This document shows positions 152 through 59,346 of a stretch of 64,000 nt of DNA, piece after piece (positions within the stretch are counted from its first letter, which is position 1; the number at the start of each line of letters is the position of its first letter). Position numbers and translations under genes: made by a program. The stretch covers positions 28,644,001 to 28,708,000 of the forward strand of contig OZ281497.1 of the NCBI GenBank assembly GCA_965637545.1, written 5' to 3'. Under the pieces are notes generated by a model, which was not told the DNA's origin, ran no database searches, and worked only from the letters and a program-made list of their open reading frames with translations. Source of the DNA: Phallusia mammillata. Lineage: Eukaryota.

Positions 152-1020
152 GGCAACACAGCCATCGTCGCTTCTACTATAAGCGGATGCGTTATATTAA
201 TCATAATCTACATCGCCATTGTTGTTGTTGTTGTTTCATCACACATTAAAAGAAGGTAACCAATAAACGTTTCTTTGAAGCAGAAAATAAAGTTGAACCT
301 TTTTAAGCGATAAGAATATTAACCTGTCGTTTTTTCAACTTGGTGAGTAAGACCTTTCGACTCAGACCTAACCACTTGTGCTGATGCATTGTGGTTTTTT
401 TCCATCATTCAGGAAGTAAATTACCTTCAACTTTCGCAGGAGAAACAAACCCGTAAACAAAGCAGTAGTGACTAAATACAACGCAGGAGGTTGGAAAATA
501 ATCATAGTTACTAATACATCGTAATTTTCTTGTATGTGGAAAACAATCAAATCTAATTGCGATGATAGACTTTAATGTGTACACTCTTACAGTTTTCTTT
601 TCCTTACGTTTTATCCCTAATTTTTGATGGTAGTTGTTTAGTATGCATATGTTGTATTTAACAGCCGACAAATTTGAACCCGAAGAAACGTACAACATTC
701 CTCAAACCCAATGTCCACCGTGGTACCAACAAGCTGATGACGTCAACCACTATGACGCAATCCAGGGGTCAATAGCGGGAAGCAGCAATGCTCAGGTCAG
801 AAAGTTGATACAATTAACAAAGGTTCACGACAATGGACAACAATCACATGTTCGAAAATACGATCACAATCAATTGGATGAAGTCAGTTACGATACTTTG
901 CAACTATCTCAACATGTGGAAGTCCACGATCAATTTGCAAGCGGCAGCAATTCAACTAATATCTATGATAACAGAAACGACCCTAAACCGAATTTAGCCT
1001 ACGATAAATTACAACTATGA
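152..1020 (+). CDS. U0: 3' part of CTLD-receptor family gene (TM exon, 50-nt exon, class A tail); 5' part not in window
   Basis: TM remnant 152-255 (GNTAIVASTISGCVILIIIYIAIVVVVVSSHIKRR, GT at 256), exon 440-489 (RRNKPVNKAVVTKYNAG), last exon 665-1020 (ETYNIP..NHYDAI..VSYDTL..IYDN..LAYDKLQL*). Upstream of 152 the sequence switches to a reversed repeat and no in-phase acceptor is visible. Confidence 0.75.
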
Positions 1021-1914
1021 TTTAGCATTTTGTCGTCATGTTGCTGTTTTCCTTCTCTATTTTTTACCTGAAATAGTATTGAAATTCCCAAACCTGTCTA
1101 CTGTAAGTTGTAGTCTACGACAGTCCAACTTTTTCGTATGTTGTGTTAATTTAACAAAATGCATATTTGTAACCCTTTGCTTTAAACAGCAATATAACGG
1201 TTATGCTACGTCGTATGGGTAACATAGATGCCTTTTCAACCGATTGTTTTACAAACTGAAAAATGGTTGTTTTAAAGATTTTTTCGCGACATGGTTCAAA
1301 ATTGTTTCGAAATGAATTTATATCTTCAGTTTGCGTTTAAAACTGCTGTCAAAATCACAGTATAAGTTATTAGCTGTGTTTCAGAAATCATGGAAACATT
1401 ATTGCAACCTAATTGTCTCGATACTGCATTAAAACATCTTTTGTTGCCTATACTTAGCGCTACGTAAAATATTAAAGATGGACTCGATTAATTCTGCATC
1501 AGAAAAACAGGAAATATAGCAAACCATTATGTATCTCCACGTGATGACAAGGAGCGAAAGTGGGATGACGTGATCTGATTGAAATTTTGACAATAGTTTT
1601 TTTCAGCATCAGGAACTCCGCCAGCACTATAAGGTAGTTATTTAGTTCAAACTATAAACAACAATGCAGCAAAATGTATTTTACGAGAATACAACCGTAG
1701 AATAAGTTTTTTAGTTTACTTATTAGAGTCAAAATAAAAGCTTTTAGAGACAACAAATTTTGTCGTAAATGATTAACTTTTGAGCTTGTCGGCTATAAAT
1801 GTTTAATTTATTCAGTTTCTTGTTTTTTAAACACCAAGAAAGTTGTTTACTAGTAGGAGATTCAAATCATTAATAAAAAGTAAGTAAACAGTGTTAAAAA
1901 CGATAAAAACAAAT

Positions 1915-2671
1915 ATGAAGTTGTTAGTTTTGTTGTGTTTAACTGTTTGTGCTGAGGGACGAATTTGGTATAACTTTAATGGATTCCAATATTCCATCGA
2001 AATGACTCCAGTCACTTCATATGCTGAAGCTAAAATGGGATGTTCTGCGTTGGAAGCCAATGTAGCTAATGTCAAAACCGCAGCAATCTTTAAGTTTTTG
2101 AAAACATACATAAACTTGACAGGTAATAATTTTAAACGACAAATTTTATATTTTTAATAAAATGGTGTTTTTGACATTTCTATTTTTTGTCCCTATGTGA
2201 TACTGCATACATAACTATTTGGGTGACTTCATGCATCAAGAATACGAGCCTAAATACTAGTATGATATGATCAAACCATTTAATATAATAACAACAAAGA
2301 AAATTTGAAGCTCCGAGAATGCAGTTACACGTTATTTGATAATCAATACAAAAGTAGCAAATCTTACAAGAAAATAACTAAAAAATCTTATCTAATGGCG
2401 AGTTGCAATTGTTTAAGATTTCCCTTACTCATTTTACATTGGTGGAAAAAGAATCATGGGCACACATAGTTTTCGATGGAATGATGGAAGCAATGCTACT
2501 GTTCCTAAAGATATGTGGGGCGGTAGGCAGCCAAATAATATGGGCGGAATAGAAGATTGCGTCACAATGGGTTACGCTTATTCTCTTGTTTCATCTTACA
2601 AATTGTATGACGTAAAGTGCACAAGACACAATGCGAGATATATTTGTGAGAAAGGCACTAAAGGTGAGTAA
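1915..2671 (+). CDS. U1: signal peptide + CTLD only (no stalk/TM exon before next copy)
   Basis: Exon 1915-2122 (MKLLVLLCLTVCAEG..SYAEAKMGC..INLT, GT 2123). Exon 2418-2663 (DFPYSFYIGG..WNDGS..QPNN..DCVTMG..LYDVKC..YICEK). Reading through the donor gives GE-stop at 2671. Confidence 0.8.
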
Positions 2672-3791: not shown

Positions 3792-6637
3792 ATGACAGGT
3801 TTTCGTTACGTTGTGTTTATTTGTTTGTGCTGAAGGACGAACTTGGCATAACTTCAATGGATTTCAATATTCTATCGAAATGACTCCAGTCACTTCATAT
3901 GCTAAAGCAGACATGGGATGTTCTGCATTGCAAGCTAACGTAGCTAACATAAAAACCACAGAAATCTTTGAGTTTTTGAAGTCATACATAAACTTGACAG
4001 GTAAGTTTAGACATTTTCTTTGCATTGTACTACAAGCAAACCTAAAACAAGTGTGTGTAAAGTAACAAACGTATTTTTGACCTGCCGGTTTTTATTTTTA
4101 TCTGTCAGAGAGGTTGTTTCGACTTTTTTTGTTTTTTATGATTTTCCTAGTAAATGAACTGGCGATCTACCAGAAAGGATCGTGACGTCACTGCCTGTTT
4201 AATCTTCCCCTTACTTCGTGCACGTGTTGCTTTGCTTTCTGGTTAATTCACGTTGTTTAAAATTTGTGTTGGGAATCGACTGTTTTATTTTAGACAAACC
4301 CTTTTCGCTTTTCATCGGTGCAAAAAGAGTCGGGAGCACAACCAAGTTTCGATGGAATGATGGAAGCAGTGTTTCTCTTACAACTGTGTGGTATAGTGGG
4401 CAACCCAATAATCTACACATGAATGATAACTGCGTCACAATGGGACATACGGACTACATTATAGACTCAACTGATCTCTATTGGTATGACGTACCATGCA
4501 CAAGACACAAAGCGAGATACATTTGTGAGAAAATGATTTCAGGTAAACCTGGTTGGGATACAGAAATTTGTTTGAAATAGGCATTTTACAATATGAATCG
4601 AAATACCGACTTAACCATATAAAACCTGGATTATTAGGTATATTTCTCAACAGGATTTCTATTATGTTCCGCCACAATTTGTTGAAACAATAAAAACTCA
4701 CAAGTTACTAACAAGAATAGTATTTTGTTGGCAACCAATGTGACAAAAATTCTAAAACAATTTTATCTTTTTTACATCATGCGTGAATCTTTGCAATCTG
4801 ATCAAAATTGTAGAAATCAACCGTTTTTTCTTTATTATAGCCAACACGTCAGCAACTCAAACAACCAAAACAAACGTCAAAATATCCAACATTAAAGGAA
4901 GCAACACCGCACCATCCACCACCATCAGTTTGGCCACAGTAGTCGTAACCAGCAAACCACACTCAACAACCAATACCGCACCATCTACCACCATCAATTT
5001 GACCACAGCAGTCGGAACCAGCCAACCACACTCAACAACCAACACCGCACCATCTACAACCATCGATTTGACCACAGCAGTCGGAACCAGTCAACCACAC
5101 TCAACAACCAATGCCGCACCATTCACCACTGCCGGTTTAACGACACCAAAGGGAACCAACCAACCACGTTTAACAATCGACACCGCACCATCTACCACCA
5201 TCGGTTTAACGACACCAATAGGAACGAGCCAACCAAGCTCAGCAACCATCTCTTCTACACCATCTAACATATCACAAGGCAAGAAATGTCTAACTGGCTT
5301 TCTTTTTTATCCTTAGGTTGTGTTGACACAAGTTTTTGTTTGTCTAAATTAGCTGTAACCCTCTTTAAAACTTCAAGGTTTTCCTCGTTAAAAAAATCCT
5401 GCATAAAGGAAAAACAGAACCTTAGGCAAAACTATTTAGTGTGTTTCACTCCAAAATCTGAGATGTAATGTTCAGCTTTCCGTGTGTGTTTTAATCTCCC
5501 TGTAGTCTCAAAGTTGGTGTTTAGAGATTTATTAATCTATGCTAGTTAATTATAAAGCGAAACTAAAAGCAATCTGTCATGTTTTCAAAGTAATGAAGGG
5601 ATTCTATTGTTAGTAATTTTTGGAGATCGTTTAACTCGTTGCTTGCCCCAGAAGAGTTCTATAAATAATAATAACTTTTCTTTAAGGTTCAAAATTAGCC
5701 ACCATAGTATCAGCAACATGTGGGAGTGTCATCGTCATTAGCTGCATTGTCATTGTCGTTGTGACTATGCAAAAACGGAAAAGAAGGTAATAAGCAAGTT
5801 TTTTTGGCTTAAATCCATGCAAGCTGCATTAAATTTTTCTGCCAAAGAGAAATTGATTGAAACGCCTTAACGTATTATTTAAGGATCTATTAAAAGGGCA
5901 AGAGGATATTGTTAAACACCGGAACAACATGCTTACATACACATTTATAAATACACTCTTGTTGGTCAATACAGTTAAAACTGACATATGTTTGCATCGC
6001 AGAAACAAGATGTCAGCGAGAACTGAAGATGAAAGTGTGTACGTTGACATGAGTAAGTTTTCACAATGAAGCTTAAGTGAAATACAAAACCACAAACATT
6101 TTGGCAAACACGTTCATCTCATTTCAGCAACTTAAATATGATTTTATCTAAATAAGCGTTTTTCAAACCAAGTTATAATAAACATTTTATTGTTATAAAC
6201 AGCTGGAAATCGTCAGATTATAGAAAAACACAGCAATCCACCAATCTACATGAATACCTTAGGAAAACCTTCACCGCAGCAACCTGATGACAACAATCCT
6301 AATTACGTCACCAAAGAACGAGGTCCTTATGACACGATTATTGTTTCTTGATATTTTTTGTTGTGTATCAATGTGCAGCTTAACATGCAGTTAAATGCAT
6401 TTGTACTTTGTTTTTTTCCATACTTGTGCAAACATTTTGCTCGCGATTTTGTCTTATTTTAAAATTATACTCGTTTTAGTTGATGGAAAGATAGCAAAAA
6501 CCAACAAGGATCCGCCAACTTACGTCAATTGCTCCGTACAACCTACCACGTCACAACAATCACAAGCTGATGACGTCAATCCTTGTAGCATGATCGGAGA
6601 GCGACAACCTGATTATATCACAATTGATCCATTTTAA
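3792..6637 (+). CDS. U2: CTLD-mucin-TM receptor, class B tail; start codon out of frame by 1 nt
   Basis: Exons ~3792-4000, 4294-4542, 4841-5278 (GC donor), 5687-5786 (TM), 6003-6052 (YVDM), 6203-6322 (IYMN, NPNY), 6480-6637 (TYVN, DYITI*). All phases are compatible. ATG 3792 runs into TGA in its own frame; the CTLD frame starts at GTT 3799. Confidence 0.8.
4903..5247 (+). repeat. 5 x 69-nt (23-aa) tandem repeat in U2 mucin stalk
   Basis: NTAPSTTISLATVVVTSKPHSTT / NTAPSTTINLTTAVGTSQPHSTT / NTAPSTTIDLTTAVGTSQPHSTT / NAAPFTTAGLTTPKGTNQPRLTI / DTAPSTTIGLTTPIGTSQPSSAT. Confidence 0.9.
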
Positions 6638-7802: not shown

Positions 7803-9215
7803 TCAAAAATTCATGTATTCAGCTCCTGCCTCTTGAATGACGTCATAAGGACTTTCCTGATTGGATTGTTGAGGTTGTGACGTAGAAGATTGTTTGGAAT
7901 CATTGATATAGATTGGTGGGTTGTTGCGTGGTTCTTCGAATTGAATATTTTCACCTGCGTTAAGTGTATGATATAGAATGTGCTTTCATGAGCATTTGCT
8001 TGTCTGTTATAACAGACAGATTGTTTCAAATTTCAAGAATAATTTAAACATCTCTTGAATAAATGTCTTAGAGTTACACGAACCATTGTTTTTCTTTCTG
8101 TATACAGCGTTTTCTAGTATTCTATTTTCCGCTTTGTTTCTGTAAATACAATCGAGTCATTTACTTCAGATAAATTTAAACATTTTCCTCAAAGTTTGTG
8201 AAGTTGTCATAAGCTGTTCTGGTTTTTACAACAATCTACAAATTTAACGATACATTTAATTTGCTCGACCCAGATTAACGAACACGTAGTTTCTGCTACT
8301 TATTGGGAACAGGTTCATGTGGTTCCATTTGTAATTCAAACATAACGTTGCAAAACAAATCAGTTGCATTGCAAGTCTGCATTGAAACACACAACTTACC
8401 TTTTATCACGTTTTTGCAGCGTCATAAAGACAATGACGATGCACATTACAATGACGCAAGCGGAAGCTGTTATGCCAACAATGAGAGCGATATTATTTGT
8501 GGCTGCACCTGACCAAGATAATAATGTTAAAATGAAGATAGAAACAAGCAATTGTTGTTGTTTTTTTAAAAGTTGCAAATCTAAACAGAAATACATATAA
8601 CGTTGTCAAGTGTTCAAACTTACTTTCAGCTGGTTTTTGGCAAACGTATCTCGACTGGTATTGTGTGCATGGTACATCGTGCCAAAGATAAAACTGTTTC
8701 TGCTCGGAGGTGTAACCTATTGAGACACAATTATCCAGACCAGCATAGGAGTTTGGTTGTCCATTATCCCACATAGTTGATGAAACTATACTCCCATCGG
8801 TCCATTGAAAGTTGATTGTGTTTCCGATTCTTGTCGCACCGATGTACAGTGAGTAAGGAGCTTCTGTATATGTAATGTTATTTTTGTGTATGCAAAAACA
8901 TTAGGCACGTTTTTTTTGTAAATTATGTAATGTAACCTAAAATTTAAGGTTAAATAAAAATATAACAACGAAAGTCTGTTTTATGCACTGACTAAAACAG
9001 TCGATTCGGAGAAACAATAACTCATGAAAACCAGACAACAAACGTGGCAGTACTTGTCAGGTCTATGAATTTCTTCAAAAAATCAAAGATGTCTGTAGTT
9101 TTGACGTTAGCCAAATTAGCTTGCAACGCAGAACAATTCCTCTCTGCTTCAGCAAATGAATTGACTGGAGTCATTTCGATAGAATATTGAAATCCTTGAA
9201 AGGTATGCCAAGTTC
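7803..9215 (-). CDS. U3: inverted stalk-less CTLD-TM receptor; its own first exon is defective
   Basis: Minus-strand exons 9054-~9215 (TWHTFQGFQYSIEM..; in-frame TGA where paralogs have CGA, no ATG found), 8624-8863 (CTLD C-half), 8400-8508 (TM), 8084-8139, 7803-7954 (NPPIYIN..SPYDVI..EYMNF*). Confidence 0.7.
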
Positions 9216-9573
9216 ATGCAAGGTGTAGCATGTTTAAAACAAGCGCACAAACACACCAAAAGGATGTGTAAAGCTGCGTCGACTTTTTTCTAATGTAACC
9301 TTTGTGGACAACCGTACGTCTTTTAGGAACTGCTTTAGCATGCAAAAGTTCATTTAAAAGTGGAACTCAAAGTGTAAAAAAACTCATGTTTTCCCAAGGT
9401 TTGAGTTGATAAGCGCAACTGCATTCTACTGACAAAGTTGGTGGTGAAAAATGCGTGTAGCTTATCTTACTACCGTGCTCTCTAAAGTGCACCGAAACGT
9501 GTCATTGGCTTTATTCTTTATTCTTAACAATCTGGATTAATGCCTGTCGCAACATCCGCCTCTTTGTCTCGAA

Positions 9574-10396
9574 CTAATCAATAATAAAATTCATAGTAAA
9601 ACTGATATACATGATATAACATGATTCGATCAATCCCATGCAGCCCTTAACTAATAAAATCAACAAAAACCAAAGTATTGCCAACAACCCAAACTTATTT
9701 TGAACAAGTTTTTGGCAAACGTATCTCGACTGGTATTGTGTGCATGGTACATCGTGCCAAAGATAAAACGGAATCTGCTCGGAGGTGTAACCCATTGAGA
9801 CACAATTATCCAAACCAGCATAGGAGTTCGGTTGTCCTTTATTCCACATAGTTGATGAAACTATACTCCCATCGGTCCATTGAAAGTTGATTGTGTTTCC
9901 GATTCTTGTCGCACCGATGTACAGTGAGTAAGGAGCTTCTACAAATATAAATATGTAAAGTGAATGTGTGCATGTAACTCATTAAGGACGGTCATCGATT
10001 AAAATAAATCTACTTTAAATCGTTGAGTGTTTTGCTTTTTTTGCTTACACATTTAATTTTATTTAAAACAATTTTTAAAACAAATGTTGTAATGCTAAAT
10101 AAAGTTTTAAAAAAAGGTGTTTCAGCGGCTGAATACCAAAAACAGTCATAACAAGGAAACTTAAAACCAGTTGCTTAATTACCTGTCAAGTTTATAAATG
10201 ACTTTAAAAATTCGAAGGTTTGGTTAGTTTTAACGTTAGCTACATTAGCTTGCAACGCAGAACATTTCATCTCTGCTTCAGCATATGAATTGACTGGAGT
10301 CATTTCGATGGAATATTGAAATCCATTGAAGTTATGCCAAGTTCGTCCCTCAGCATAAACAGTTAAACACAGCATAAACAATAAAACTAAACCCAT
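9574..10396 (-). CDS. U4: inverted signal peptide + CTLD; second-exon donor mutated
   Basis: Exon 10183-10396 (MGLVLLFMLCLTVYAEG..INLT), exon 9699-9938. The homologous donor reads ATAAGT instead of GTAAGT, so the frame runs on to a stop at 9574. Confidence 0.75.
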
Positions 10397-11648: not shown

Positions 11649-12627
11649 ATGGCGATGTTAGATTTATTATTTACGTTGCGCTCATCTGTTTTGCTGTAGC
11701 AAAACTTTAATGGATTTCAAAATTTTATTATAATGACTCCACTCAATTCATATGCTGCAGCATTTTGCGTGGAATGCTAATGTAGCCAACGTTAAACCGA
11801 ATATTTACGGTTTAAATACCGGACAGGTGTTTTGATCAATAAAGAACGTCAAGCTGTCCAGGAGTTGCAAGTCCTGTTGGATGCGTGTAAAAGGTGGAGC
11901 AACGAGAAACAGGTATTTATAAGGAGGCAATGGCGATACAAGAAAAAGACAATAGGATGTGTCGATTCGCATGAATGAACACGGGGTGAGGTCGCTACAT
12001 TCTTGTATAAGTCAGTTAATGGAAAATGTCTAGTTTCAATAAAATATTGTCGATTTGAGCAAAATTGTAACAAAATTGTTTTGTTCATTGTATATTGTAG
12101 CAAGGACGGTAATCAGAGCAAGCAATAACAAGGTGTCATCCACTATCAACACAAAAATCAAACAAACTGCCATTTTAGCTATAACCACTCCAGCTAACAC
12201 CTGTATATCAATTGAAATCACAGGCAAACCGCCATTCACCACCACAACAACAATAACCACACCGGTCACCAAAAGCAACCACACCAACTTCCACAAACTA
12301 AACCGACGACCAGCACCAAATCAATCATCCCATTCTACGCCGTTAAAGCAACATCTACCACCCATGCAACACCACACACTAAGGGTACTAATGCAGTAAC
12401 CCGAAACTTCCCACTGTTTCTCATCATTTGAACCACGCAGTCGGAACCAGCAAACCATTTCCTGCAACCAACACATCACAAATACACAAAAAACATTAAC
12501 TTTTCAAAGTGTTGAAGCACACAACAACCCAACAATCAACCGACGTCAATAACTCCTAGCTGATGACGACAATACCTATTGCGTCAGCCAAGATCGACGT
12601 CCTGATTACATGACATTTGATCCATAA
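11649..12627 (+). pseudogene. U5: decayed copy (broken exon 1, stalk, end of class B tail; no CTLD exon 2 or TM)
   Basis: 11649-11826 is exon 1 with deletions, ~12101-12480 is a Thr-rich stalk with degenerate donor, ~12520-12627 is DDDNTYCVSQDRRPDYMTFDP*. Confidence 0.7.
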
Positions 12628-33720: not shown

Positions 33721-33721
33721 A

Positions 33722-34049
33722 CGATGACGTCAACCATTATGATGCAATTCGAGAATCATCTCAGGAAACCGTTGCACAGCCAGCAGCGGAAAGCAGCAAC
33801 GTCTATGCTCAGATCAGAAAGTCGAATCAATCAACAAAGATTTACAACAATGGACAACAATCACATGTTCAAAAATACGATCGCAATCAATTGGATGAAT
33901 ATAGTTACGACACTTTGCAACTATCTCAACATGTGGAAGTCCACGATCAATTTGCAAGCGAAAGCATTCCAACTAATATCTATGATAATAGATACGAGGC
34001 TAATGACGAATCGGATTCACCTTACGATGAATTACAACGTGACAAATAA
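33722..34049 (+). pseudogene. Class A tail fragment right of the PLE (acceptor and first codons lost)
   Basis: DDVNHYDAI..NVYAQI..EYSYDTL..IYDN..SPYDELQRDK*. Confidence 0.8.
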
Positions 34050-43387: not shown

Positions 43388-44469
43388 TAAGTATTTTACT
43401 CGACGTGTTCAACAATCTTCAAATAAAGTGTAACCAAATTATTGCTTCGTTTGTTCCTCTACCATTCGCCGTGCTTTGAACATTGGTGTTTATTATTCAA
43501 TCGACATCGACAGTTGCATTGTAATCTTAGCGGGCCTGCAGGCGATTATTTCCCGCTGTTGAAAGCAGTGCAACCGCTTACAATTAACTAAAAACCTGAC
43601 TTTGTTTCTTAACTGTTTATATGATCGAATTTGTATTATTACGGGTAACACTTGAAATGTGTCTCAAGATACATTAAACTAAAACATCATGTAAATGAAA
43701 ACCCATCTGTGTTCATAGTTTCTCCATTAAGCTTTACTACTTAAAGAGTAATATATAAAAAATCGTGTATACGTGCTATTCAATGTAATCCAATAACTAG
43801 TTAAGTACTGAACTGGATGGCTGTTAGCGTGTAGGTGTAATGTAAATGCCTCAAGGGATTTCAAACTTCAATTAATTAGTTTATTGTGTTAAACTGTGTT
43901 AGCAGTTTCACTGTGGTAATAGCCACAAACTGTTCCTCTGCGAGTGCAAAGTTTAGTATGTAGTAAACTTATATATTTTTATGCATTATTTTGTTTTTGA
44001 AAACGTCCCTCATTTGAACAAACAAAAATGTAATTGGATATTCCGAAAAAAAAACGAGCTTTAATTTTTGCAATTAAGAATTGGGCCACAAACTCTATAA
44101 AAACAGATTCAAACAAATGATATTTGAGAAATGGGACAATTTTTTTTTTCGAAAGATCAACGGACTTGCAAACGTTCTCGCCGTTGAAAGTCGCAGTCCG
44201 TTTCAGCTTATATTACTTTCGGTCAAAGGCCTGTCTAGCTTTATATCCGCTTTGTTGGATTATTTTATCACTTCCCTTTATTCGTGCTATTGGTTGTTTT
44301 ATCTATAAAAGTTGTAACGTGTCATCAATTACATGAAAATAAATGTGTAAAAACACAGCTGTGTTCTGTAAGTTTAGTAAAGGTAAAGTTGCATGACGTC
44401 ATTGGAGGATAAGTTCATGTAATGCGTTTCGACAAAAAACAAGAATACAGAAAAATAACGTCACATCTC

Positions 44470-44654: not shown

Positions 44655-45649
44655 GAAGTTTATCAACGTCTACAGAAAACACAGAACCAGGTCAGATTAA
44701 AACACTTTTTCAATTAAAAATCGGAATTTACCACGAAACCGGTTTCTTTACGCACCGCGCATACGGTAGATTGTTTTATTTTCTGATTTTACAGCTCCAG
44801 AAAAAGCCAACACAGCCATTATTGCTTCTACAATAGGCGGATGCGTCATATTAGTCATAATCTGCATCGTCATTGTCTTTGTGAGGTCACACAATAAAAG
44901 AAGGTAACATATTTGTATGCAATTGTGACTAATGCTGACATTATTAATTCACCTTTTAAAAGTATTGTTTAACAAGTAAACTCTACCCATGTGTACTTTT
45001 GCAGGAAAAACGAAGCGTCTAATGAAGTAGCAGTGATTTATAACAACGCAGGGGGTAAGAAAATGCGACACTTTTTTTAACAGTTACTGTAACTTTGGTT
45101 GTGTTACGAAAACAATAAATTTTATATGTACGCTTTCCTGGTGTACACAAGTGTAAACAGTTTGTCATGCAGTTTAATTAATATTGAAGATTAAAAAATA
45201 AATGTGTTAAAACAGATGATGGATTTGACCCCGAAGAAACATACAACATCCCTCAAATTGAAGATAACAGCTTGGCCAACCATTCAACACAACCGTTCTC
45301 GTGTCATCAAAACGATGACGTCAACCACTATGACGTAATTCGAGAATCAAGCCAAGAAACCGTTTCACAACCAGTAGCGGGAAGCAGCGATATCTATGCT
45401 CATATCAGGACGTCGAAACAATCAACAAAGGTTCACGACAATGGAGAACAATCACATGTCCGAAAATGGGATCACAACTGGATGAAGTCAGTTACGACAC
45501 TTTGCAACTATCTCAACATGTGGAAGTCCACGATCAATTTGCAAGCGGCAGCAATCCAACTAATATCTATGATAACAGACATGGGGCTGATGAAGAATCG
45601 GATTCACCCTACGATGAATTACGACGTGACAAATAAACACAAGAACTGA
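44655..45649 (+). pseudogene. U12: headless stalk-end/TM/class A tail cassette with tail frameshift
   Basis: Stalk end to 44690, TM 44795-44903, 45005-45054, tail from 45216. A 4-nt deletion at RKWDHNW puts VSYDTL out of frame; the shifted frame stops at 45649. Confidence 0.75.
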
Positions 45650-47670: not shown

Positions 47671-49276
47671 ATGGTGTTGTTGGTTTTATTACTCCTTTCG
47701 TGTTTATCTGTTTCTGCTGAAAACCGAACTTGGCATAACTTCAATGGATTTCAATATTCCATCGAAATGACTCCAGTAACTTCATATGCTGAGGCTGAGA
47801 TGAGATGTTCTGCGTTGCAAGCCAATCTAGCTAACATTAAAACTACAGCGATTAACAACTTCTTGAAGAAATTTTGTTACCAATCAGGTATTGTTTTCGC
47901 TTTTGCTTCGTCTTCTAAGACATTAAAAATATTTGTTTGTATTTTTAAGCGCGGAACATAACATAATTTTTATTATCAGTATACCGGAATGCTTTTTGTT
48001 TGTCTTTAGAAACCTTATATTGGGTATATATTGGTGCCAAAAGAGTTGGAAACACAAGTAAGTTTCAATGGAATGACGGAAGTAATGTTTTAGTTCCAAA
48101 GAACATGTGGACGAGTGGACAACCAAATAACTTTCGAGGACAAGAAAATTGTATTGTAATAAGTTATGCAACCACTGGGCTGAACACGCGTTCCGAATGG
48201 ATGGATGTGAGTTGTACATCAAACAGTTCGGGATACATTTGCCAGAGGGTTAATCCAGGTGAGAAAATTTTGTTTTTGTAAATAAATACAAAGGTGCTAA
48301 CAAGTCAAAATTTAATGTCAAACCTTATCAGATATAAGTTAACAAAAATATTATCTGAAATATTTTGGAAACTACGGATTTCTTGGTGGATAAAAAGTTT
48401 CAGAAAAATAATGTATTGCACGATACAGTCATCAGTCGAAATGCATGGTTTGATGGTTGGTGTAAACTTTTTATACTCATGATATCTCATGATACAAGAA
48501 AAAGTTCGCTTAACACGCCAAAATCCATAAAGTTTTGTCAACCAAGATTTTAGAACTACTACTACCATGTCACTATTTACCGAAGAAACCGCTACTACCA
48601 TGTCACCATTCATTGAACCAGCCGTCGTCACGATGACATCAATCGATCACACAACTCAAGGTAAGGAGATGTGTGGTTCATATTTATGGTACTGTACAAA
48701 CATTTTGGGTTTCTAGTTGCAACAAAAGTTGGAGAAGTAGTCATCATTACTAGCGTTGGAGTCGCTATCGTCATAATCTGCATCGTTATAGCAGTTGTGA
48801 CGTCGGTGCAACGTAAAAGAAGGTAACAGCATGATTATATAAACTGCTGCATGCTTTGGGCCTAAATACTCATATAGACCGGATATTCTTCATAATGTCG
48901 TCATTTCCATCGTTTTTGTAGGAATGCACGATCAGTAAGAAATGCAAATGAGAGTGTCTCCATCAATACTAGTAGGTTATTCGATTTTAGTTCATATTAA
49001 TCGTAATTTTTTGTATTCATAGATAACAAATGCAAGTCAACAATTTTGAATTTATTTTTAATAGTTGAAAATCACCAAATCGAAGAAACAAACAACACGC
49101 CACCAAATCGAAAATCAGCTAGTACGGAACAAAACATGATTGTTGACGAAGTTGCACAGCCAGCAGCGGAAAGCAGCGATGTCTATGCCCAGGTCAGAAA
49201 ATCGAATCAATCAACAAAGGTTCACGACAATGGACGACAAACATGTTCGAAAATACGATCACAATCAATTGGATGA
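47671..49276 (+). CDS. U13: CTLD receptor with tyrosine-poor chimeric tail (~315 aa)
   Basis: Exons 47671-47887, 48010-48258, stalk ~48547-48660 (acceptor tentative), TM 48717-48822, 48922-48971 (no Tyr), 49065-49276 (only DVYAQV; 2-nt deletion before YDHN/VSYDTL). Confidence 0.7.
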
Positions 49277-50356
49277 AGTCAGTTACGACACTTTGCAACT
49301 ATCTCAACATGTGAAAGTCCACGATCAATTTGCAAGCGGCAACAATCCGCAATGAACAAAAAAAACTGAGATTTAGTTTTTGTACCTGCAGATTTATTGT
49401 GTGTATTTTTACGGACGTTTAGCAAAACTTTCAAAAACATTCTAGAGATACCTTAATTCCAAATTTCAGATCCTTTCTGTATTTTTTGCTGTATTGTGTT
49501 TATTTGCATTTTTGTGGTTAAGATTTAATGTACATTCCCATCTTGGTTTTTTTCCTGTAGATTTATCGCATGTTTTATGACGGGTATTTAGCAAGCGTTT
49601 CAAAAGGTTTGACCGTTTCTTAAACGTATATTTTTGTTTTTACACAATTTAACAATATCTTAAGATCGATCACAATAGAATCTGTGTTGGTTAACTACCA
49701 AAAGTGAACTGTTTTGCATATTTAGAAACATTTTGTCAGTCACGCAACAAACATACAATGAACAGTATAGACAGGAACTTGTTAGAATTTCTGTGTATAA
49801 GTTTTCGACAATGATAGGTATGACATTGACATATCAATACTTTACCACAAAAATTGTTAAAACATACAACAAAACAGACATGTAATAAATATAAGGGAAC
49901 TGATAGTGCAAGTAGAGCGTTATATCTACATGCAAATCTTTACTGGTGCAGAGAGGTTCAAAGTACTATTGCAGACTGCGCGATGTTAAAAAAATTCAAA
50001 TTTTATTTAAATTTCACCCCATGAACTTTGAGAATTAATGGATTGATCCGTTCAGGTTGCGAAACAAACACAACGAAGTAAGGAAACTAATTTTTAGTCT
50101 ATAGCCACCTCTCTTGTGCTACGTAACCACTATTAATAGTCGGTTGGTGGTGTGTAAATTGTTGCAAAAAGTGCTTTGGAAGACTTTCAAAATGTAAGGA
50201 CAAAAGTAACAAGATGTGTTGACAGTTAATGCGAACGCAATTTTTCACTTTAGGCCCAAAAGTCGAGAAGTTTCAGAGCATTCCAGAGAAATAAGTATTC
50301 GGGTGTCAACAATTATAACTAGCTTTGGTCATAGTTGTGCTTTGTATACTATACAT

Positions 50357-50912
50357 ATGACGCTGTTAAGTTTGTTGTTTATGTTGTGTTTGTCTGTTTC
50401 TGCTGAAAACCGAACTTGGCATAACTTTAATGGATTTCAATATTCAATCGAAATGACTCCAGTCACTTCATATCATTAAGCAGAGATGGGATGTTCTGTA
50501 ATGTAAGCTAATGTAGCTAACGTTCAAAATATTAACATCTTTGAGATTTTGAAGAAATTTATAAAGTTGACAGGTAATGTTTATCCACATTTGTTATTTC
50601 TTAGCCAGTATGAAATTTTCCATTAAGTTTGAGTGCAGCAGATATTTTAGGCAATTGGTACATGTAAAGATTTATCGCAAAATGACATCATAAAGTTATG
50701 ACGACATTAACCAGACTCCGATGGTCAAAATACAATTCAGGTTTGTATGAATCACTTAATATGTGGTTTGAAACACACATAATCAGATATTGATTGCACG
50801 CATGCGACTTAGTGCTGTGTGTACACTAACATACATTGTAATTTACTCTGGAATGTCTGCTTCAGATGAACCCTTCTCTTTTTTCATCTGTGCTAAAAGT
50901 ATCGAAAACACA
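50357..50912 (+). pseudogene. CTLD pseudogene (U14p)
   Basis: Exon 50357-50573 with TAA at 50477-50479 and a second stop; exon 2 starts at 50866 (DEPFSFFICAK) and is truncated after ~45 nt. Confidence 0.85.
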
Positions 50913-51512: not shown

Positions 51513-54134
51513 ATGTCATTGTTAGTTTTGTTAGTTTTATTGTGTTTATCTGTTTCTGCTGGAGGCCAAACTTGGCATAACTTCAATGGATTCCAATATT
51601 CCATCGAAATGACTCCAGTCTCTTCACATGCTGAAGCAGAAATGGGATGTTCTGCGTTGCAAGCTAATGTAGCTAAAGTTAAAACTACGGAAATCTTTGA
51701 GTTTCTAAAGTCACAAATCAACCTGACAGGTGGGTTAGTTATTTCTTAACCTTTTGTTCCTCGCAAAAGTCTCTCCATTTTACACGCAATTAATACTTAA
51801 AAATTTCATGCACCTGGCAATGTAATTTGTAAACTAACTATTTGTTTAGATTATCCTCACTCGTTTTACATCGGAGCAAAAAGAATCGGAAACACAGATA
51901 AGTTTCAGTGGAATGATGGAAGCAATGTATCACTTACAACAAATATGTGGGAAGATGGTCAACCAAATCACCTAAAAGATCATAATTGCGTCACAATGGG
52001 ATGGAATGTATATCAAACAGCTTATCAATGGTTTGATGTACCATGTACAAATTACAATACGAAATACATTTGTGAGAAAATCTCAGGTAAACTAGGGGTA
52101 GTTACACCAACGTAAAACATAGCTTGTCTTTTATGTTTGGAATATGTAATATAGAGAAAGCATAAAATAAAATAGTAGATCAATATTCTCAGATTGAAAT
52201 GTTGTCTTTTCTAACTTAACTAATGTAATATATAGCTACGGATGTGCTTTTAAGCGAAGCGCAAAAAAACCGTGTGATCCTCATTAACAAGAAAATTTAG
52301 TCAGTGTTTTATGCGCAAAAATGCGTAAATTAAAGTTATGTCTAATAGAATTGAAATAATACTTGTACCATTAAATACAGGATTATGGTACAAAACAAGC
52401 TCTTCTTGATTTACTGGACATTAGTAACTCGTGCCAAAACAGGCAACAGTTTTGTTTTGCACGAATTTACTTTGTTCAAGCTAATTGCTTATACTATCAC
52501 AACAAGCGTCACCATGTTCACCATTACAGAAACCATTTTATCAACACCAGTCGGAACCAGCCAACCAGCCTTAGAAGAAACAGCTTTCAGACCATCCAAC
52601 ACGTCACAAGGCAAGAAAATTTCTATGATAAGATTTAATGAGTAGATTATACGTCCACATTTCCTATTTCACCCTTAAAAACACTCTTAACGAAGGCTGG
52701 TACAACACACGTTGCGACAAAGCGTACAATAATGTAAGTATTTCATTTATGTAATGCTGTGCTAACATCACTTGGTGAACATAGAGCAACACAATTGCAC
52801 TGAATCACTATAAGCAGGAAATAACTGCGCAACGTTGAAACGTTTAAAGATAGAGGGCAGCTGAGGGCACAATTGGTTAATAATGGAGGGCTAAACGCAT
52901 TGTAGCTAGATCATGGTGTAAACCGAACCACTGTAACACCTAAATGTTTGCTTTAACATGAGATATCATTTATTTTTCGTATACGGCAGGTTGTGTAAAT
53001 CTTTATGCTAAACAAAAGTCCACAATTTGTTTTTTGTTTTTTCAATTAAGTTTGCAAATATGATTTGGAAATGTTTGGAGAAACTTAAACAATATTAATT
53101 GTAAAAACTTGTAATTTGCCACTTAAAGAAAAAGTCAACATGAACATCGTCATCTTGGCCTCAGCAACGTGCGGAAGCTTGATTGTCATAATGTGCATTG
53201 TCATTGTCATTGTCATTGTGACGTTGCGAAAACGTAAAAGGAGGTAAGCAGGGTTTTCGTTACAGCGCATTAGAATCCGTTATGCAAATAAGTTCAGCTT
53301 GTTTCCATACTAAATCCATTTTCCATGTGTTGAAGCGCAATCATAATTCAGGTTCATAATTCTTTAGGCCCAGATACCATCTTGTAGTAAAATTAGCCTA
53401 ATAAAAAAAATGCGTTACGATATTGTAGCCTAACATAAGCAAGCAGATAGTTTGGCTCAACATATCCACATTTGTTTATTATTTAATCTTATTAAGAATA
53501 AATTAAAGAATAAATTTTCTTCCTAGGAATGATTCGTTAGCGACAAATGAAGGTGAATATGAATACGTTGACATGAGTAAGTAATAACATCGTTGTATTT
53601 GAGGAACAAAAACATTTATTTTTTCCAACATAGCACATTGATTTATTTTGCCTGATTTGGTTTCGTTATATCTAACCACGTTTAGACTTTTACAGTAAGT
53701 GTTTGTCTAAATTCTGAAACAATGTGTTTGTTGTAAACAGCTGAAAATCGTGGGATTATAGAAACACACACGAACCCATCAATGTACCTTAATACCTTTG
53801 GACAACCTTCAACGTCACAACAACACACTGATGAGATCAGTCCTTATTGCGTCACCCATGCACAAGGTACTGAATGAAATGTTCACACATAAGATCACAC
53901 GATTTGACACTAAATTTTGCCATCTCTCTAATTAGGTATAAAATGCACATTGTTGCAAAATTGTGTTTGTTTTGTTTAGATTGCATTCCAGTACATGAAG
54001 AAACATACCAACACCCAACAGCCTATGTCAAAAACTCCGTGCCACCAATCACGTCACAATCACCAGCAGATGACGACAATCCCTATTGCGTCAGCCAAGA
54101 TCGACGTCCTGATTACATAACAATTGATCCTTAA
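51513..54134 (+). CDS. U14: intact CTLD-mucin-TM receptor, class B tail (~355 aa)
   Basis: Exons 51513-51729, 51850-52086 (not in ORF track; GQPNH..NCVTMG..WFDVPC..ICEK), ~52443-52610 (GC donor; acceptor tentative), 53129-53243, 53527-53576 (EYEYVDM), 53741-53866 (MYLN), 53980-54134 (DYITIDP*). Confidence 0.85.
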
Positions 54135-56356: not shown

Positions 56357-59346
56357 ATGAATTTTTACATTCTTCTGGTTTTATTGATGTGCGCGATGGC
56401 TGATTCGCAAACTTGGCATGAATTCCAGAACTTTAAATATTCTGTCGAAATGACCTCTGTCAATTCATATGCTGAAGCAGAGAAGGGATGTTCTGCGTTG
56501 CAAGCTAATGTAGCTAACGTCAAAACTACGGCAATCTTTGATTTTTTGAAGCTTCATATAAATGTGACAGGTACATGGTTTGAATAAAGATTGGTAATCA
56601 ACTAATCATTTGTGTGCATTTTGTCAATTTCTTTAGACCTAACCACCTGTATCATTATTAATTACGTTGTGTGAGACATTATATTTTGGCGCACAAGTGC
56701 ACAGCCTGTGATCGTGGAAGCACGTGTATTGAAATATCGTGTTGTACTGACAGTCGTGTTGTAACAAGTATTCGTAAAATATACTCTCAAAATAATCATT
56801 TAATAATTTGTTAAATATTTTTGCAAATGTTTGAAAACCTGTAAAGTTATTTTCCACTTGAGTTTTGATGGCTTACAAACAATGATATGAACAAAAGTTT
56901 GCTTTTAAACCAGGTGTACCATATTGCTTTTACATCGGAGCAATGAAAAATTCAAGCACTGGTTTGTTTCAATGGAACGATGGAAGTGACGTCACAACCA
57001 CTCAGTGGTATATGAACGAGCCAAACAACTTTGGAGGGAACGAGAATTGTATAACCATGGGCGACACTCATAATTTTAGATCATCTTTTCCATGGTTTGA
57101 TGTACCGTGCAACAAATACTTTGCCAGATATATTTGTGAGAAACCTATTCCAAGTAAGTTCCCGAAACGTATTTGTAAATTCGATTGTGACAAAAATAAT
57201 ACCAAATAAACTTGTTGCAATTATCTATTATTTGAAATGATAGACAGAATTTTGTGGAACAACACAAACAATTTTCGAAATTAGTAAAAGTTGTGCAAGT
57301 TGTTTAAAATTATTCTCTTTGTTTTTTATAGCAACCACGACAATGAGTACAAGAAGCAGTACAGAGGCATCAACTACTACCAAAACCATACCAACTACAA
57401 CCACCCGAACAACAAAACCTGCACCAAGCATCACTACAACAACTACATCAACTACTACTGCTGCTACAACCACATCAACTACTATTACAATAAAAACCAA
57501 ACCAACTGAAAAGGTCACAACAAGCACAAATGCAAAAACAACAAGTGTGACCGAATCAACCATTCCAGCCACCACAACCACGCCATCCACCACTATTAAT
57601 GTAACCACACCAGTCGGAACCAGCCAACCACCCTTAGCAACCAGCACTTCAACACCGACGAGCACATCACCAGGTAACAACATTTCTCCCACTGTGGTTC
57701 TTTTTTTTAACTTTCTAATGAATATTTTTGAAAGATGCTTTTCCCGTCAAGTCTAGTTTCGTATTACTGAAGTACTAGCAAAACATTTTGCTTTTATCTA
57801 TAGGTGTGCCACCAACAAGCCTTATATATGCATTGATCTTGATAGCTTCACAAAATGCCCAATTAACGCACAGTGATATACTACTTTCCCTGTTCACAAT
57901 TTTAGCAATAAATCAGAAAAACCACACATAATCTTTGAAATTACACAGCATTAGCAAATATTACCAAACATTTACTCCAAATTTTAACCAGTTTAATTTC
58001 CATTTTACCACAGCGGGAGCCAAACAAAACGACTCCAACATGATTATTATTATTGCTGCGTCATGCGGCGGATTCCTCTTAGTCACAATCTGCATTGTTA
58101 TTATCTGTGTGACGTCACGGAAGCGTCGCTCGAGGTAAGTGTGACGTAACATGATTCGAGTAAAACGGAAAAGCTTAAAGCAATTGGAGGATTAATAGAT
58201 AGTCTAAACTGCTACTGGCATTGAAGTGCGCTTCTGCGACTTAGAGTTGTTTTTTATTTGTGTTGAACAATGTAAGTATTGCGCGTGATAAACTTTTATA
58301 CCCCCATAAATGCTATTATGGTACCCTAATTAACACTATATATTCATGAGATTTTTGCAATTGTGTCCCAACTCTAATTGTTAGGGAACCACTACAACTG
58401 AATATTTAAACTAGCAATAGAGCCCGGCCTACAACTTCATCTGCCTGCTTCTTATTAACCCGTTTATATGTTTTACAGCAAACAGGCTCCAGGAGTAAGT
58501 TTGTCTGGTTTGAGGGATTATGACGTAGTAGGTGAGTATAGTTGCAATAAAAATGCAAAATATTTCTGAATGTTAAATGATCAACCTCAAATATCAAAAC
58601 AACTATATAACATAGACCAATAAAGAAACTACATTAGGTCCTTGGAAAATAGGTTAACGCTAAAAGCTGGTAAAAACGTCTGTGGGGTCATAAAAATCCT
58701 ACATTTTAGAAGATCAGGCACATTTAGGTAAATTTAATTTTTTCGTTTTGTGACAGATGACGAATATCAGCCCGAAGAGACGTACAGCATTCCTAAAGCA
58801 GACTTAAGCAGCTTAGCGAAGCCATCTGTACCGAATGATGACAACAGCGTACATTACGAGCCTGCACCACGTGGTAACTTTTATGACGAAACACCTGACG
58901 ACAGTAATCCCTATAGTGACGTCAGAAAGTTGCCACAATCAACAAAGACACGCAACAATGACCAACAATCACATGTACCGGAGGCCACTTATAATTTGGA
59001 ATACAGCACTGCGCGGCAAACCGAAACTGATGTGGAAGCTTACGACCAACTAACGCATGATAAACTGCCCTCTGAAGCGTATGACACTGTAAAGCGATCC
59101 CATAATGAGGCAGACGTTAGTTATGACCAACTAGGACATGCTGAAATATCACCAGCTGATACTTACGACACTGCACGGCCACCAGCAAGCAATTCTGTAG
59201 AATATGACCAACTTGGAAGAGTTGATATACACACTAAACCTTATGATACATTACAAAATACTGCAATGAATTCAAACATGTATAGTCAGCTCAACAAAAC
59301 ACAAAAGACAGACAACACTTATGACACAACGAGTCATGTTAAATAG
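56357..59346 (+). CDS. U15: intact, most divergent member; EPN-type CTLD, 114-aa stalk, 16-Tyr tail (~519 aa)
   Basis: Exons 56357-56570, 56914-57153, 57332-57673, 58014-58134, 58479-58531 (SKQAPGVSLSGLRDYDVV), 58757-59346; all GT-AG, total 1560 nt in one frame. Confidence 0.9.

Follow-up and report, generated by a model that had tools for sequence, protein, structure and literature searches.

Tandem genes for probable type I lectin-like receptors with tyrosine-rich tails in the ascidian Phallusia mammillata

Results

Exon families and gene units

The window, by which we mean the whole 64,000-nt stretch of Phallusia mammillata DNA analysed (contig OZ281497.1, 28,644,001-28,708,000, forward strand; all coordinates below are positions within it), holds about 16 tandem units of one lectin-type receptor gene, some intact and many broken. 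Exon families were defined by six-frame clustering, tblastn with exon peptides and splice-site checks; E-values between paralogues of 1e-20 to 1e-59 show that these families are not chance resemblances, and splice phases are conserved across all of them. E1 (217 nt, phase-1 donor, 14 copies) encodes a signal peptide and the N-terminal half of a lectin-like domain (CTLD); nine or ten copies have an ATG and an open frame, while in five the ATG is missing or the exon is broken. The C-terminal half lies on E2 (237-252 nt, phase 1-1), which is open in 12 of 12 copies, with two further fragments; its defects are a lost donor in U4 and one lost cysteine in U8. Downstream come E3, a Thr/Ser/Pro mucin exon (phase 1-1, about 8 copies); E4, a transmembrane (TM) segment followed by RKKRR (13 copies); and E5, a juxtamembrane micro-exon (typically 50 nt, phase 2 to 1, 12 copies of 50-56 nt) whose tyrosine is kept in 10 of 11 aligned copies and lost only in U13. 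The tail is either a single terminal exon (tail A, 7 copies) or one or two modules of ~40 aa (tail B, about 8 sets). A prior sequence-only reading had ascribed one shared exon order to all ~16 units; the exon families and their order stand, whereas only U7 and U15 have all six parts in order with a GT at every donor.

Complete ORFs with GT/GC-AG models are present in five units (U6, U7, U11, U14 and U15), the remainder being partial, hybrid or dead. U7 (21614..23816, +; 416 aa) is the complete canonical gene, with E1 at 21614-21830, E2 at 22094-22342, the mucin exon at 22512-22712, TM at 22843-22951, E5 at 23138-23187 and tail A at 23392-23816, every junction being GT-AG. U15 (56357..59346, +; 519 aa), also complete and the most divergent, comprises E1 56357-56570, E2 56914-57153, mucin 57332-57673, TM 58014-58134, E5 58479-58531 and a long tail A, 58757-59346. 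Complete, too, is U14 (51513..54134, +; E1 51513-51729, E2 51850-52086, TM 53129-53243, E5 53527-53576 with YVDM, tail B 53741-53866 and 53980-54134), in which E3 (52530-52610), as in U2, can be included only via a GC donor, giving a product of 326 aa with E3 and 299 aa without. U11 (41031..43390, +; 288 aa) is complete without a mucin exon (E1 41031-41247, E2 41508-41759, TM 42459-42567, E5 42741-42790, tail B 42982-43065 and 43233-43390). The dead E3 of U6 (15638..18581, +), running from 16529 and carrying an in-frame TAA and a ~770-bp insertion, must be skipped for an open frame, and the other exons (E1 15638-15854, E2 16110-16358, TM 17642-17750, E5 17938-17987, tail B 18177-18260 and 18430-18581) then form an open 286-aa model.

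Three units are head-only. U1 (1915..2663, +; E1 1915-2122 with ATG and signal peptide, E2 2418-2663 with GT donor) joins in frame to the downstream exons of U2 in a 439-aa model. U2 itself (3796..6637, +) has an E1 without ATG (3796-4000), E2 4294-4542, a GC-donor mucin E3 containing five 69-bp repeats (4841-5278), TM 5687-5786, E5 6003-6052 (YVDM) and tail B 6203-6322 and 6480-6637 (PPIY, PPTY, DYITI). U4 (9699..10396, -) retains an intact E1 (10183-10396) and an E2 (9699-9938) whose donor is mutated to AT. U10 (38000..38809, +; E1 38000-38216, E2 38558-38809) belongs to a 3-kb segment that repeats the U11 head in tandem (95.5% identical) and joins in frame to the U11 TM and tail exons. U3 (7806..9270, -) has an E1 without signal peptide (9054-9270; stop), E2 8624-8863, TM ~8399-8506, E5 ~8084-8139 and a single tail B exon, 7806-7952 (PPIY, SPYDVI, YMNF).

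U0 (141..1020, +), cut by the window edge, keeps an open frame through TM ~141-255, E5 440-489 and tail A 665-1020. Two units are headless: U9 (30932..34046, +; mucin 30932-31240, TM ~31478-31573, E5 31747-31796 with YVNI, B1 32330-32464, B2 relic from 32598), where insertion of a repeat element removed the 5' end of tail A (33717-34046), and U12 (44798..45636, +; TM ~44798-44906, E5 45005-45054, tail A from 45212), with a 1-nt frameshift near 45476. U13 (47671..49352, +) has E1 47671-47887, E2 48010-48258, TM 48717-48822, the tyrosine-less E5 at 48922-48971 and a degenerate, frameshifted tail A (49067-49352). Dead remnants make up U5 (11649..12624, +; degenerate E1 11649-11774, mucin-like 12088-12478, tail B2 relic with a stop 12505-12624) and the dead head U13b (50357..50912, +; E1 with two stops, E2 fragment). 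U8 (25669..29543, +) is a dead composite of an E1 with a stop and no ATG, E2 26055-26303 (cysteine lost), two TM exons (from 27148 and from 27564), a mucin relic 27288-27392, E5 28142-28191 (YLDM), a B1 relic from 28305 and a tail A (29124-29543) with a frameshift and the changes Y1 to W and Y2 to F. Transposon-like ORFs at 32882..33664 (-) show a GIY-YIG-like motif by eye, and a Pfam search of them returned no match; copies lie at ~14296-14658 and ~20253-20615 (78% identical).

Recent tandem segmental duplications of 3-6 kb are 92-96% identical and, with the transposon matches, are consistent with birth-and-death turnover; the mixture of five complete ORFs with partial, hybrid and dead copies bears out the earlier proposal of this pattern. 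Purifying selection is indicated by dN/dS values of 0.2-0.5 for E1 and 0.2-0.7 for E2, and no positive or diversifying selection was detected (dN/dS at most 0.94 everywhere). The variable region is the long-loop half of the CTLD. U15 is ~99% identical in DNA runs of other individuals, as estimated from word shares of 0.66-0.84.

Lectin-like domain and topology

Pfam Lectin_C (PF00059) matches the E2 exons at E = 4e-11 and 9e-10 (44.0 and 39.7 bits against a gathering cut-off of 22.6) and matches P0001, a related Phallusia protein introduced below, at 43.5 bits over residues 38-153. The PDB sequence matches of the CTLD include DEC-205 CTLD2 (best), CLEC4D, DCIR, mincle and langerin (E 1e-9 to 1e-4). 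All open copies retain the four canonical core cysteines (C1-C4, C2-C3), in the contexts ..AE..C(S/A)AL.., ..(D/N)C(V/I)TMG.., W.DV.C and Y(I/V)C(E/Q), and FYIGAK replaces the WIGL core motif. The domain is of the short form, since the N-terminal cysteine pair of the long form is absent. At the EPN position most copies have QPN, U6 has QPD and only U15 has a true EPN, while the WND Asn of Ca2+ site 2 is found in no copy (WHD, WYD, WFD, WMD, LYD or WWD instead); lectin activity is therefore doubtful, and these CTLDs may or may not bind carbohydrate. The copies do not show the EPN/QPD-plus-WND signature of true Ca2+-dependent carbohydrate-recognition domains.

A hydrophobic N-terminal signal peptide (M.LLVLL...SAEG) precedes the CTLD, TM and RKKRR follow the CTLD or mucin region, and the tail is C-terminal. 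This order points to type I topology and agrees with the single-CTLD membrane protein predicted earlier. It also led us to reject the type II C-type lectin receptor (CLR) identity implied by the database label 'CLEC4G-like', a name that is misleading because the proteins read as type I. The Pfam search found no domain besides Lectin_C, EGF and sushi included, and E2 splices straight to the mucin or TM exon; membership of the CD93/thrombomodulin group was rejected, there being no EGF-like or sushi module between CTLD and mucin stalk.

Cytoplasmic tails

The E5 tyrosine lies in IYNNA or in YVDM, YLDM or YVNI. Tail A has seven conserved tyrosines, two of them ITIM-like (VxYDTL, SPYDEL), and the ~40-aa modules of tail B carry PPxY(V/I)N, SPYCV and a terminal DYITI. 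The motif types represented are ITIM-like, ITAM-like, YxxM, YxN and PPxY. Open copies retain the tail A tyrosines in 26 of 27 cases, compared with 64% for other residues (P = 0.0002); broken copies show no such excess (10 of 13 against 73%). The earlier description of modular tails with conserved tyrosines is thereby upheld.

We took (I/V/L/S)xYxx(L/V/I) in the cytoplasmic tail as the ITIM pattern and YxxL/I-x6-12-YxxL/I as the ITAM pattern. In tail A the former is matched by VNYDTL/VSYDTL and SPYDEL/SAYDEI, conserved across open copies, with two observed against 0.27-0.33 expected (P = 0.03-0.04 against shuffles; U7 and P0001). The tail B exon of U3 holds the ITIM-pattern SPYDVI, and tail B of U6, U11 and U14 contains no canonical ITIM or ITAM motif. 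Only U15, whose tail A has three YDQL-x9-YDT(V/A/L) units, matches the ITAM pattern, through YDQLGRVDIHTKPYDTL and an overlapping second match (P = 0.001 against shuffles); the two other units end in YDTV and YDTA, and the pattern is absent from all other tails. A motif that had looked like NPxY proved to be NPPxY, that is, PPxY with an extra residue, and we rejected an NPxY/PTB-docking type of tail (LDLR, CED-1/Draper); the NPxY pattern itself gives a single chance match, NPNY in U2.

Relatives and transcripts

Searched against 1.84e9 representative proteins, the tail profile matched only P0001 (CAB3231619.1 / A0A6F9DA46; Phallusia mammillata, 355 aa), automatically named 'C-type lectin domain family 4 member G-like', for which we found no published function. 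P0001 follows E1-E2-E4-E5-tail A exactly, with signal peptide, split CTLD, TM, IxYNA micro-exon and all seven tail A tyrosines; exon by exon, it shares 55-85% identity with the window units, lacks the mucin stalk and is encoded outside the window. In RNA contigs derived from close copies (85-95% identical), three of the predicted junctions appear exactly as modelled, with GT..AG joints at 53576>53741 and 53866>53980 (both U14) and 58531>58757 (U15), and one contig links E3-E4-E5-tail A (U15). No contig at least 95% identical to the window was found; transcription and correct splicing are shown for very close copies, not for the window copies themselves. Between them, P0001 and these contigs argue against the objection that no spliced transcript joins CTLD to TM and tail.

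The searches support a tandemly duplicated gene family that appears restricted to Phallusia. Its suggested novelty holds for the family, which no paper found in our literature search describes and which is represented by one automatically named protein, but not for the ascidian receptor concept: that ascidians have CTLD/Ig membrane receptors with ITIM/ITAM tails is a general idea published since 2003, according to a summary in PMC2248247 and to PMC5465252.

Discussion

CD302, layilin, chondrolectin and the CD93/CD248/CLEC14A/thrombomodulin group are type I proteins with an N-terminal CTLD, as in the Phallusia family, and the CD93 group likewise has a mucin stalk before the TM segment. The Phallusia family differs from that group in lacking EGF or sushi modules, and from all of these proteins in that their tails are short and unrelated and their genes are single-copy and conserved, not tandem arrays; sequence searches revealed no specific affinity to them. 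Vertebrate type II CLRs (DCIR/CLEC4A, Dectin-1, Ly49, NKG2/CD94) resemble the family in their single CTLD, their clustered, rapidly duplicating genes and their signalling via tyrosine motifs (ITIM, hemITAM), to which the Phallusia motifs are comparable by sequence, and CLEC4 CTLDs are among the best matches; however, they have an N-terminal tail and neck in place of a signal peptide and a C-terminal, many-tyrosine tail of 100-220 aa, and the tails are not homologous. The ascidian CD94-like proteins BsCD94-1 and CiCD94-1 are described as type II in PMC5465252, unlike the Phallusia family. Hydractinia Alr, Botryllus fester/uncle fester and the Halocynthia A74 ITAM protein, presented as type I receptors with activating- or inhibitory-type tyrosine tails in PMC9546547, PMC12582321 and PMC5465252, are lineage-specific tandem families like the Phallusia cluster; their ectodomains are Ig-like, SCR or other rather than CTLD, and their recognition or hemocyte function is experimentally shown, whereas the Phallusia family resembles a recognition receptor family and any immune or self/non-self role for it is putative.

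Gene structure, CTLD identity, conserved splice phases and tyrosine-specific conservation are direct observations, and with them in hand we consider the window to be probably part of a large, fast-turning-over tandem cluster encoding type I single-pass receptors with signalling or uptake tails. As to topology, ligand, phosphorylation, binding partners and cell type, we infer the following. The receptor would carry a cleavable signal peptide, one short-form CTLD from two exons, an optional O-glycosylated mucin stalk (a skippable phase 1-1 cassette exon), a TM helix without a charged residue, a basic stop-transfer cluster, the residues of the 50-nt one-tyrosine juxtamembrane exon and a disordered tail, A or B, these two kinds being interchangeable. 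Its CTLD would bind an extracellular ligand, glycan or protein, and receptor clustering would lead Src-type kinases to phosphorylate tail tyrosines, which may recruit SH2 or other adaptors of SHP, Syk, Grb2 and p85 type, while WW-domain ligases may dock on PPxY; adaptor recruitment would then result in signalling and/or internalisation. Most window units are incomplete or dead, which counts against this explanation, as do the lack of RNA contigs at least 95% identical to the window, the replaced WND Asn and the absence of canonical ITIM or ITAM motifs from tail B.

It is possible, if on balance unlikely, that these are instead endocytic or scavenger lectin receptors following the logic of DEC-205, the mannose receptor and CD302, with tail tyrosines acting mainly as unphosphorylated sorting signals: YxxPhi would engage AP-2, and PPxY Nedd4-type ubiquitin ligases, to take up cargo or turn over the receptor instead of signalling through SH2 domains. 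YxxPhi is enriched in tail A (4 against 1.2 expected) and in U15 (8 against 2.3), PPxY occurs in five to six tail B modules, and DEC-205 CTLD2 is the top PDB match; yet seven conserved tyrosines per tail far exceed sorting needs, YVDM, YxN, V/SxYxxL and YxxL-x9-YxxL fit SH2 consensuses, and the two roles can coexist. YxxPhi and PPxY can act without phosphorylation, which counts against the SH2-signalling reading.

An embryonic or epithelial adhesion or mucin-type surface molecule comparable to layilin, CD93 or endosialin, unconnected with defence and linked through its tail to the cytoskeleton or to adaptors, is unlikely: it would suit the type I plan of CTLD, mucin and TM and the origin of the transcripts in small RNA runs of P. 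mammillata, which we presume may be embryo or egg libraries, but EGF and sushi domains are lacking, the tail resembles no known protein in our searches, and fast copy turnover is atypical of developmental adhesion genes. Slightly less likely still, we think, is a convergent recognition locus like the NK complex, in which a variable CTLD head, combinatorially wired to different tails, would let blood cells discriminate non-self or allogeneic targets. Such wiring would come about through exon shuffling, optional stalk exons and the duplication of heads in front of tail exons that they share (U1/U2, U4/U3, U10/U11), with tail A inhibitory-type, U15 activating-type and tail B coupled to PI3K, Grb2 and WW partners. 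There is a similarly slight chance that the window is mostly a pseudogene graveyard, its open frames young undecayed duplicates and its functional members, such as P0001, elsewhere; over half of the units are broken, consist of a head alone or lack one, and the RNA contigs and P0001 stand at the distances from the window given above, but the five complete ORFs, among which U15 is deeply divergent, speak against this, as do a dN/dS under 1 in comparisons of old paralogues and tyrosine conservation specific to open copies. A polymorphic self/non-self complex for allorecognition or gamete self-incompatibility, like the NK gene complex, Botryllus fester/fuhc or Hydractinia Alr, is very improbable despite the tandem birth-and-death array, the exchangeable ITIM-like and ITAM-like tails, the variability in the long-loop half and RNA copies just 85-95% like the reference, since dN/dS never exceeds 1, U15 is ~99% identical between individuals, Phallusia is solitary, and no expression or genetic tie to a compatibility phenotype is known.

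In the receptor cluster that we favour, the CTLD is carried by a type I scaffold, which reverses the topology of the lectin receptors on vertebrate NK and myeloid cells, and whole tail exons with tyrosine motifs are exchanged between ectodomains that are almost identical; should the tails signal, a paired-receptor-like architecture would have been invented independently here. Public protein databases contain the family only as one misnamed entry, and the exon models could serve as a starting point for annotating and experimenting on it in a laboratory model ascidian. No living group is more closely related to vertebrates than the tunicates, which, to our knowledge, have no MHC, TCR or Ig; the way they build diversified recognition receptors therefore bears on how activating and inhibitory receptor logic arose.

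Exon Families and Gene Models

Exon families were defined by clustering stop-free six-frame segments and by tblastn searches with exon peptides, after which splice sites and phases were checked copy by copy; the window is AT-rich (GC 33-43%, ~35% for the most part) and free of N runs, and its coding parts are short exons, which marks it as eukaryotic. Both approaches recovered the repeated families in the order proposed in the sequence-only reading, distributed over tandem paralogous units numbered along the window (U0 to U15, with U13b). E1 (14 copies; 217 nt, with a phase 1 donor ACAG/GT, the slash marking the splice point) encodes the signal peptide and the N-terminal half of the lectin domain, and E2 (12 copies, 12/12 open; 237-252 nt, phase 1-1) encodes its C-terminal half. 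They are followed by a Thr/Ser/Pro-rich mucin exon, E3 (~8 copies, phase 1-1), by E4 (13 copies, ending in phase 2), which specifies a transmembrane (TM) helix and then RKKRR, by the micro-exon E5 (12 copies, usually 50 nt, 53 nt in U15 and 56 nt in U3; phase 2 to 1), and by cytoplasmic tail exons, either tail A, a single terminal exon (7 copies), or tail B, one or two modules of ~40 aa (~8 sets). The exon families of the proposed six-part unit are thus confirmed, while the complete order with ordinary splice sites occurs in U7 and U15 only.

Individual copies differ in how well each exon is preserved. E1 is open with an ATG in U1, U4, U6, U7, U10, U11, U13, U14, and U15, and lacks the ATG or carries stops in U2, U3, U5, U8, and U13b; in E2, the donor is gone in U4 and one core cysteine in U8. 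The mucin exon of U2 consists of a 69-bp repeat present five times, and that of U6 is dead, with an in-frame TAA followed by a ~770-bp insertion (16683-17460) lying between copies of the short direct repeat ACTACTGT; U7 has neither lesion. The E3 donor is GT in U7, U9, and U15, and GC, in the conserved form CAAG/GCAAGAA, in U2 (5279), U8 (27383), and U14 (52611). The latter sequence is the consensus usually seen in introns of the rare GC-AG class, and donor loss in E3 of U2 and U14 was rejected in favor of this form. E5 carries a single, near-universal tyrosine (absent in U13) in the context IYNNA or IYDNA (U6, U7, U11, and U12), KYNAG (U0), YVDM (U2 and U14), YLDM (U8), YVNI (U9), or DYDVV (U15).

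Complete open reading frames were obtained for U7 (416 aa), U15 (519 aa), U14 (326 aa with E3 and 299 aa without it), and U11 (288 aa; mucin exon absent); the U6 model is open at 286 aa provided that its dead E3 is skipped, and U0 is open and truncated by the window edge. The head-only units U1, U4, and U10 each lie immediately upstream of a unit that bears tail exons, and, because the E1-to-E4 junctions are phase 1 throughout, the U1 and U10 heads are predicted to join in frame to the downstream exons of U2 and U11, respectively. U5, U8, U9, U12, U13, and U13b are dead or partial through stops, frameshifts, lost heads, or, in the tail A exon of U9, insertion of a repeat element. Directly before the E1 ATG stands an acceptor-like sequence, (t)tttgcag/aacaaac, in U6 (15624-15637), U7 (21600-21613), U10 (37986-37999), and U11 (41017-41030), with a near-match in U14 (51499-51512), which suggests that these genes have a 5'-UTR exon farther upstream or are trans-spliced to a spliced leader.

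The Lectin-Like Head

Sequence profiles identify the heads as C-type lectin-like domains (CTLDs). E2 matches Pfam Lectin_C above the gathering score, and residues 18-160 of P0001 (CAB3231619.1 / A0A6F9DA46), a Phallusia mammillata protein related to the units, match the solved CTLDs of DEC-205 (CTLD2), CLEC4D, DCIR, mincle, langerin, codakine, and a mosquito lectin with E values from 1e-9 to 1e-4. The domain has the four core cysteines and lacks the additional N-terminal pair, indicating a short-form CTLD. The N-terminal half is strongly conserved; variation is focused between 'MW..GQPNN' and 'W.DV.C', a segment corresponding to the long-loop and beta3-beta4 region, which forms the ligand face of known CTLDs. 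The dN/dS ratios are 0.2-0.5 for E1 and 0.2-0.7 for E2, and a search by dN/dS for positive selection in the CTLD loop returned none (maximum 0.94, over few sites); the CTLD is under constraint, and positive selection is not demonstrable. At the EPN position most copies have QPN, U6 has QPD, and U15 alone has EPN, and the Asn of the WND motif is substituted in all copies; judged from these residues, sugar binding that depends on calcium cannot be taken for granted.

Transmembrane Segment and Cytoplasmic Tails

The TM helix contains no charged residue, so that signaling through a DAP12-type adaptor chain is not suggested, and candidate motifs of the SH2 type (ITIM-like, ITAM-like, YVDM, and YxN) are present in E5 and the tails. 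Tail A has seven aligned tyrosines, in ETYNIP, NHYDAI, DVYAQ(I/V), RKYDHN, (V/S)xYDTL, NIYDNR, and (S)PYDEL. When the open copies in U0, U9, P0001, and U15 are set against U7, 26/27 tyrosines are kept vs. 64% of other residues (Fisher P = 0.0002, for copies that are not independent); in U15, ~1/3 of the tail A residues are shared with U7, yet 6/7 tyrosines are retained. The broken copies in U8 and U12 show no such excess (10/13 tyrosines vs. 73% of other residues). Two ITIM-pattern matches are observed in tail A vs. ~0.3 expected, and the U15 tail has two overlapping ITAM-pattern matches vs. 0.04 expected, both inside three YDQL-x9-YDT(V/A/L) units. Conservation in tail A is highest in a block other than the tyrosine motifs, (K/R)xxQSTK(V/I)xNNxQQSHV (23560-23640 and the corresponding sites of the remaining tail A exons), which persists even in the highly divergent U15 and matches no motif known to us.

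Tail B is built from a repeat module, (H/K)xNPPxY(V/I/M)N ... TSQ ... DD(x)(S/N)PY(C/Y)V(T/S), whose terminal copy has the C-terminal end RP(D/E)YIT(I/F)DP; ITIM and ITAM patterns are absent from it. An NPxY reading of its 'NPPIY' or 'NPPxY' was rejected, the motif being PPxY (WW-domain type) overlapping YxN.

Growth of the Cluster

Self-comparison of the window revealed two tandem duplications of recent origin. One is a 4.2-kb block at 92% identity, which pairs the stretch from the U5 end to the U6 head with that from the U6 end to the U7 head; the other, a 3-kb block at 95.5% identity (36658-39315 vs. 39322-42269), gave rise to the heads of U10 and U11. The similarity between U6 and U7 extends into the first codons of the tail exon, beyond which U6 has tail B and U7 has tail A, a pattern that points to unequal recombination as the means of swapping tail exons. 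Synonymous divergence is a mosaic: E2 of U10 and U11 is the same save for one codon (dS 0), while their E1 has a dS of 0.21, and in distant pairs dS is far lower in E1 than in E2. These contrasts suggest exon-wise gene conversion among units. The birth-and-death pattern proposed earlier fits the recent duplications, the tail exchange, and the mosaic dS.

Repeat-element ORFs were found at 32882-33664 (-), 14296-14658 (+), and 20253-20615 (+), and the tail A exon of U9 has lost its 5' portion to one copy of the element. Pfam returned no match to these transposon-like ORFs; a GIY-YIG-like motif (..VVYSIPCAECPLIYIG/QTGRSLNTRRKEH..) gives the impression that they perhaps derive from a Penelope-like element. 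A further dispersed repeat, with the common ORF fragment ..LRGSNKNRLKFPMT.., lies between units, always on the (-) strand, at 37121-37594, 39777-40250, and 55699-56181, and other members of this family, also (-), lie at 13095-13217, 19049-19171, and 29992-30252.

Transcripts

In runs recorded as RNA the exact-word share of U7 and U15 is small (U7 ≤3% in any RNA run). Four small RNA-type runs were mapped at 85% likeness on 53400-59399, which contains U14 and U15. Their contigs sit on the exons of both units and leave most intron sequence uncovered, and GT..AG joints occur exactly as predicted at E5 to the first tail B exon (53576>53741), between the first and second tail B exons (53866>53980), and at E5 to tail A (58531>58757). 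One 480-nt contig spans U15-type mucin, TM, E5, and tail A exons, and RNA from the second tail B exon runs on into ~570 nt of 3' UTR. A 1.3-kb contig is colinear through introns and hence unspliced. Another (run X22) connects the E1 donor with the mucin acceptor (56570>57332) and omits the second lectin exon, with only 30 nt beyond the joint; this joint is in frame, would destroy the CTLD, and may reflect an isoform, a paralogue, or a chimeric assembly.

All of the RNA pieces are 85-95% identical to the window, whereas word shares place U15 at ~99% in DNA runs of other individuals; the expressed molecules would thus come from closely related paralogues or from strongly diverged haplotypes. On these close copies, splicing occurs as modeled for the family, and none of the contigs reaches window-copy identity.

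Relatives and Proposed Function

A tail A profile run against 1.84 billion representative proteins gave a single match, P0001, which is auto-named 'C-type lectin domain family 4 member G-like'. Its order is E1-E2-E4-E5-tail A, with no mucin stalk, and its identity to the window units (55-85% per exon) marks it as a paralogue from elsewhere. CLEC4 receptors are type II, and the name is misleading for that reason. Word-based protein searches with P0001, whole or as the CTLD alone, returned only P0001 itself, a search for encoding contigs returned no record, and nothing credibly similar to the tail turned up in the ESM Atlas (score 0.89, TM ≤0.33). No such family was described in the literature covered by full-text searches, so that its standing as undescribed holds up, with this auto-named protein as its sole database relative; by these comparisons it appears limited to Phallusia so far. 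The known ascidian CTLD receptors are the CD94-like proteins of Botryllus and Ciona; from Halocynthia, an ITAM-bearing hemocyte glycoprotein has been described as well (PMC5465252). The CD94-like proteins are type II, in contrast to the window family, with its predicted type I topology and exchangeable tail exons. The more general point that CTLD or Ig membrane receptors carrying ITIM/ITAM are encoded in an ascidian genome goes back to a 2003 Ciona survey, as relayed in PMC2248247.

We consider it probable that the units form a type I surface receptor family, the best-supported reading, in which the lectin-like head would recognize an extracellular ligand and the tail would work through tyrosine-based motifs. 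The tail tyrosines may act through phosphorylation, as sorting or ubiquitin-ligase signals (YxxPhi and PPxY), or in both ways. A mainly endocytic role is compatible with the same reading and is a tentative possibility beside the SH2-type candidates. A role in developmental adhesion is unlikely. That the window units are mostly pseudogenes is a little less likely still, with broken units on one side and open models and a constrained CTLD on the other. Allorecognition or self-incompatibility is possible at a very low probability. The observations of the sequence-only reading are borne out by the exon families, the splice phases, and the Pfam Lectin_C match, and its interpretation is supported in part. 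CTLD receptors with tyrosine-motif tails were known already; what the Phallusia receptor family would bring to them is type I topology, interchangeable tail exons, and a mucin stalk that can be absent.
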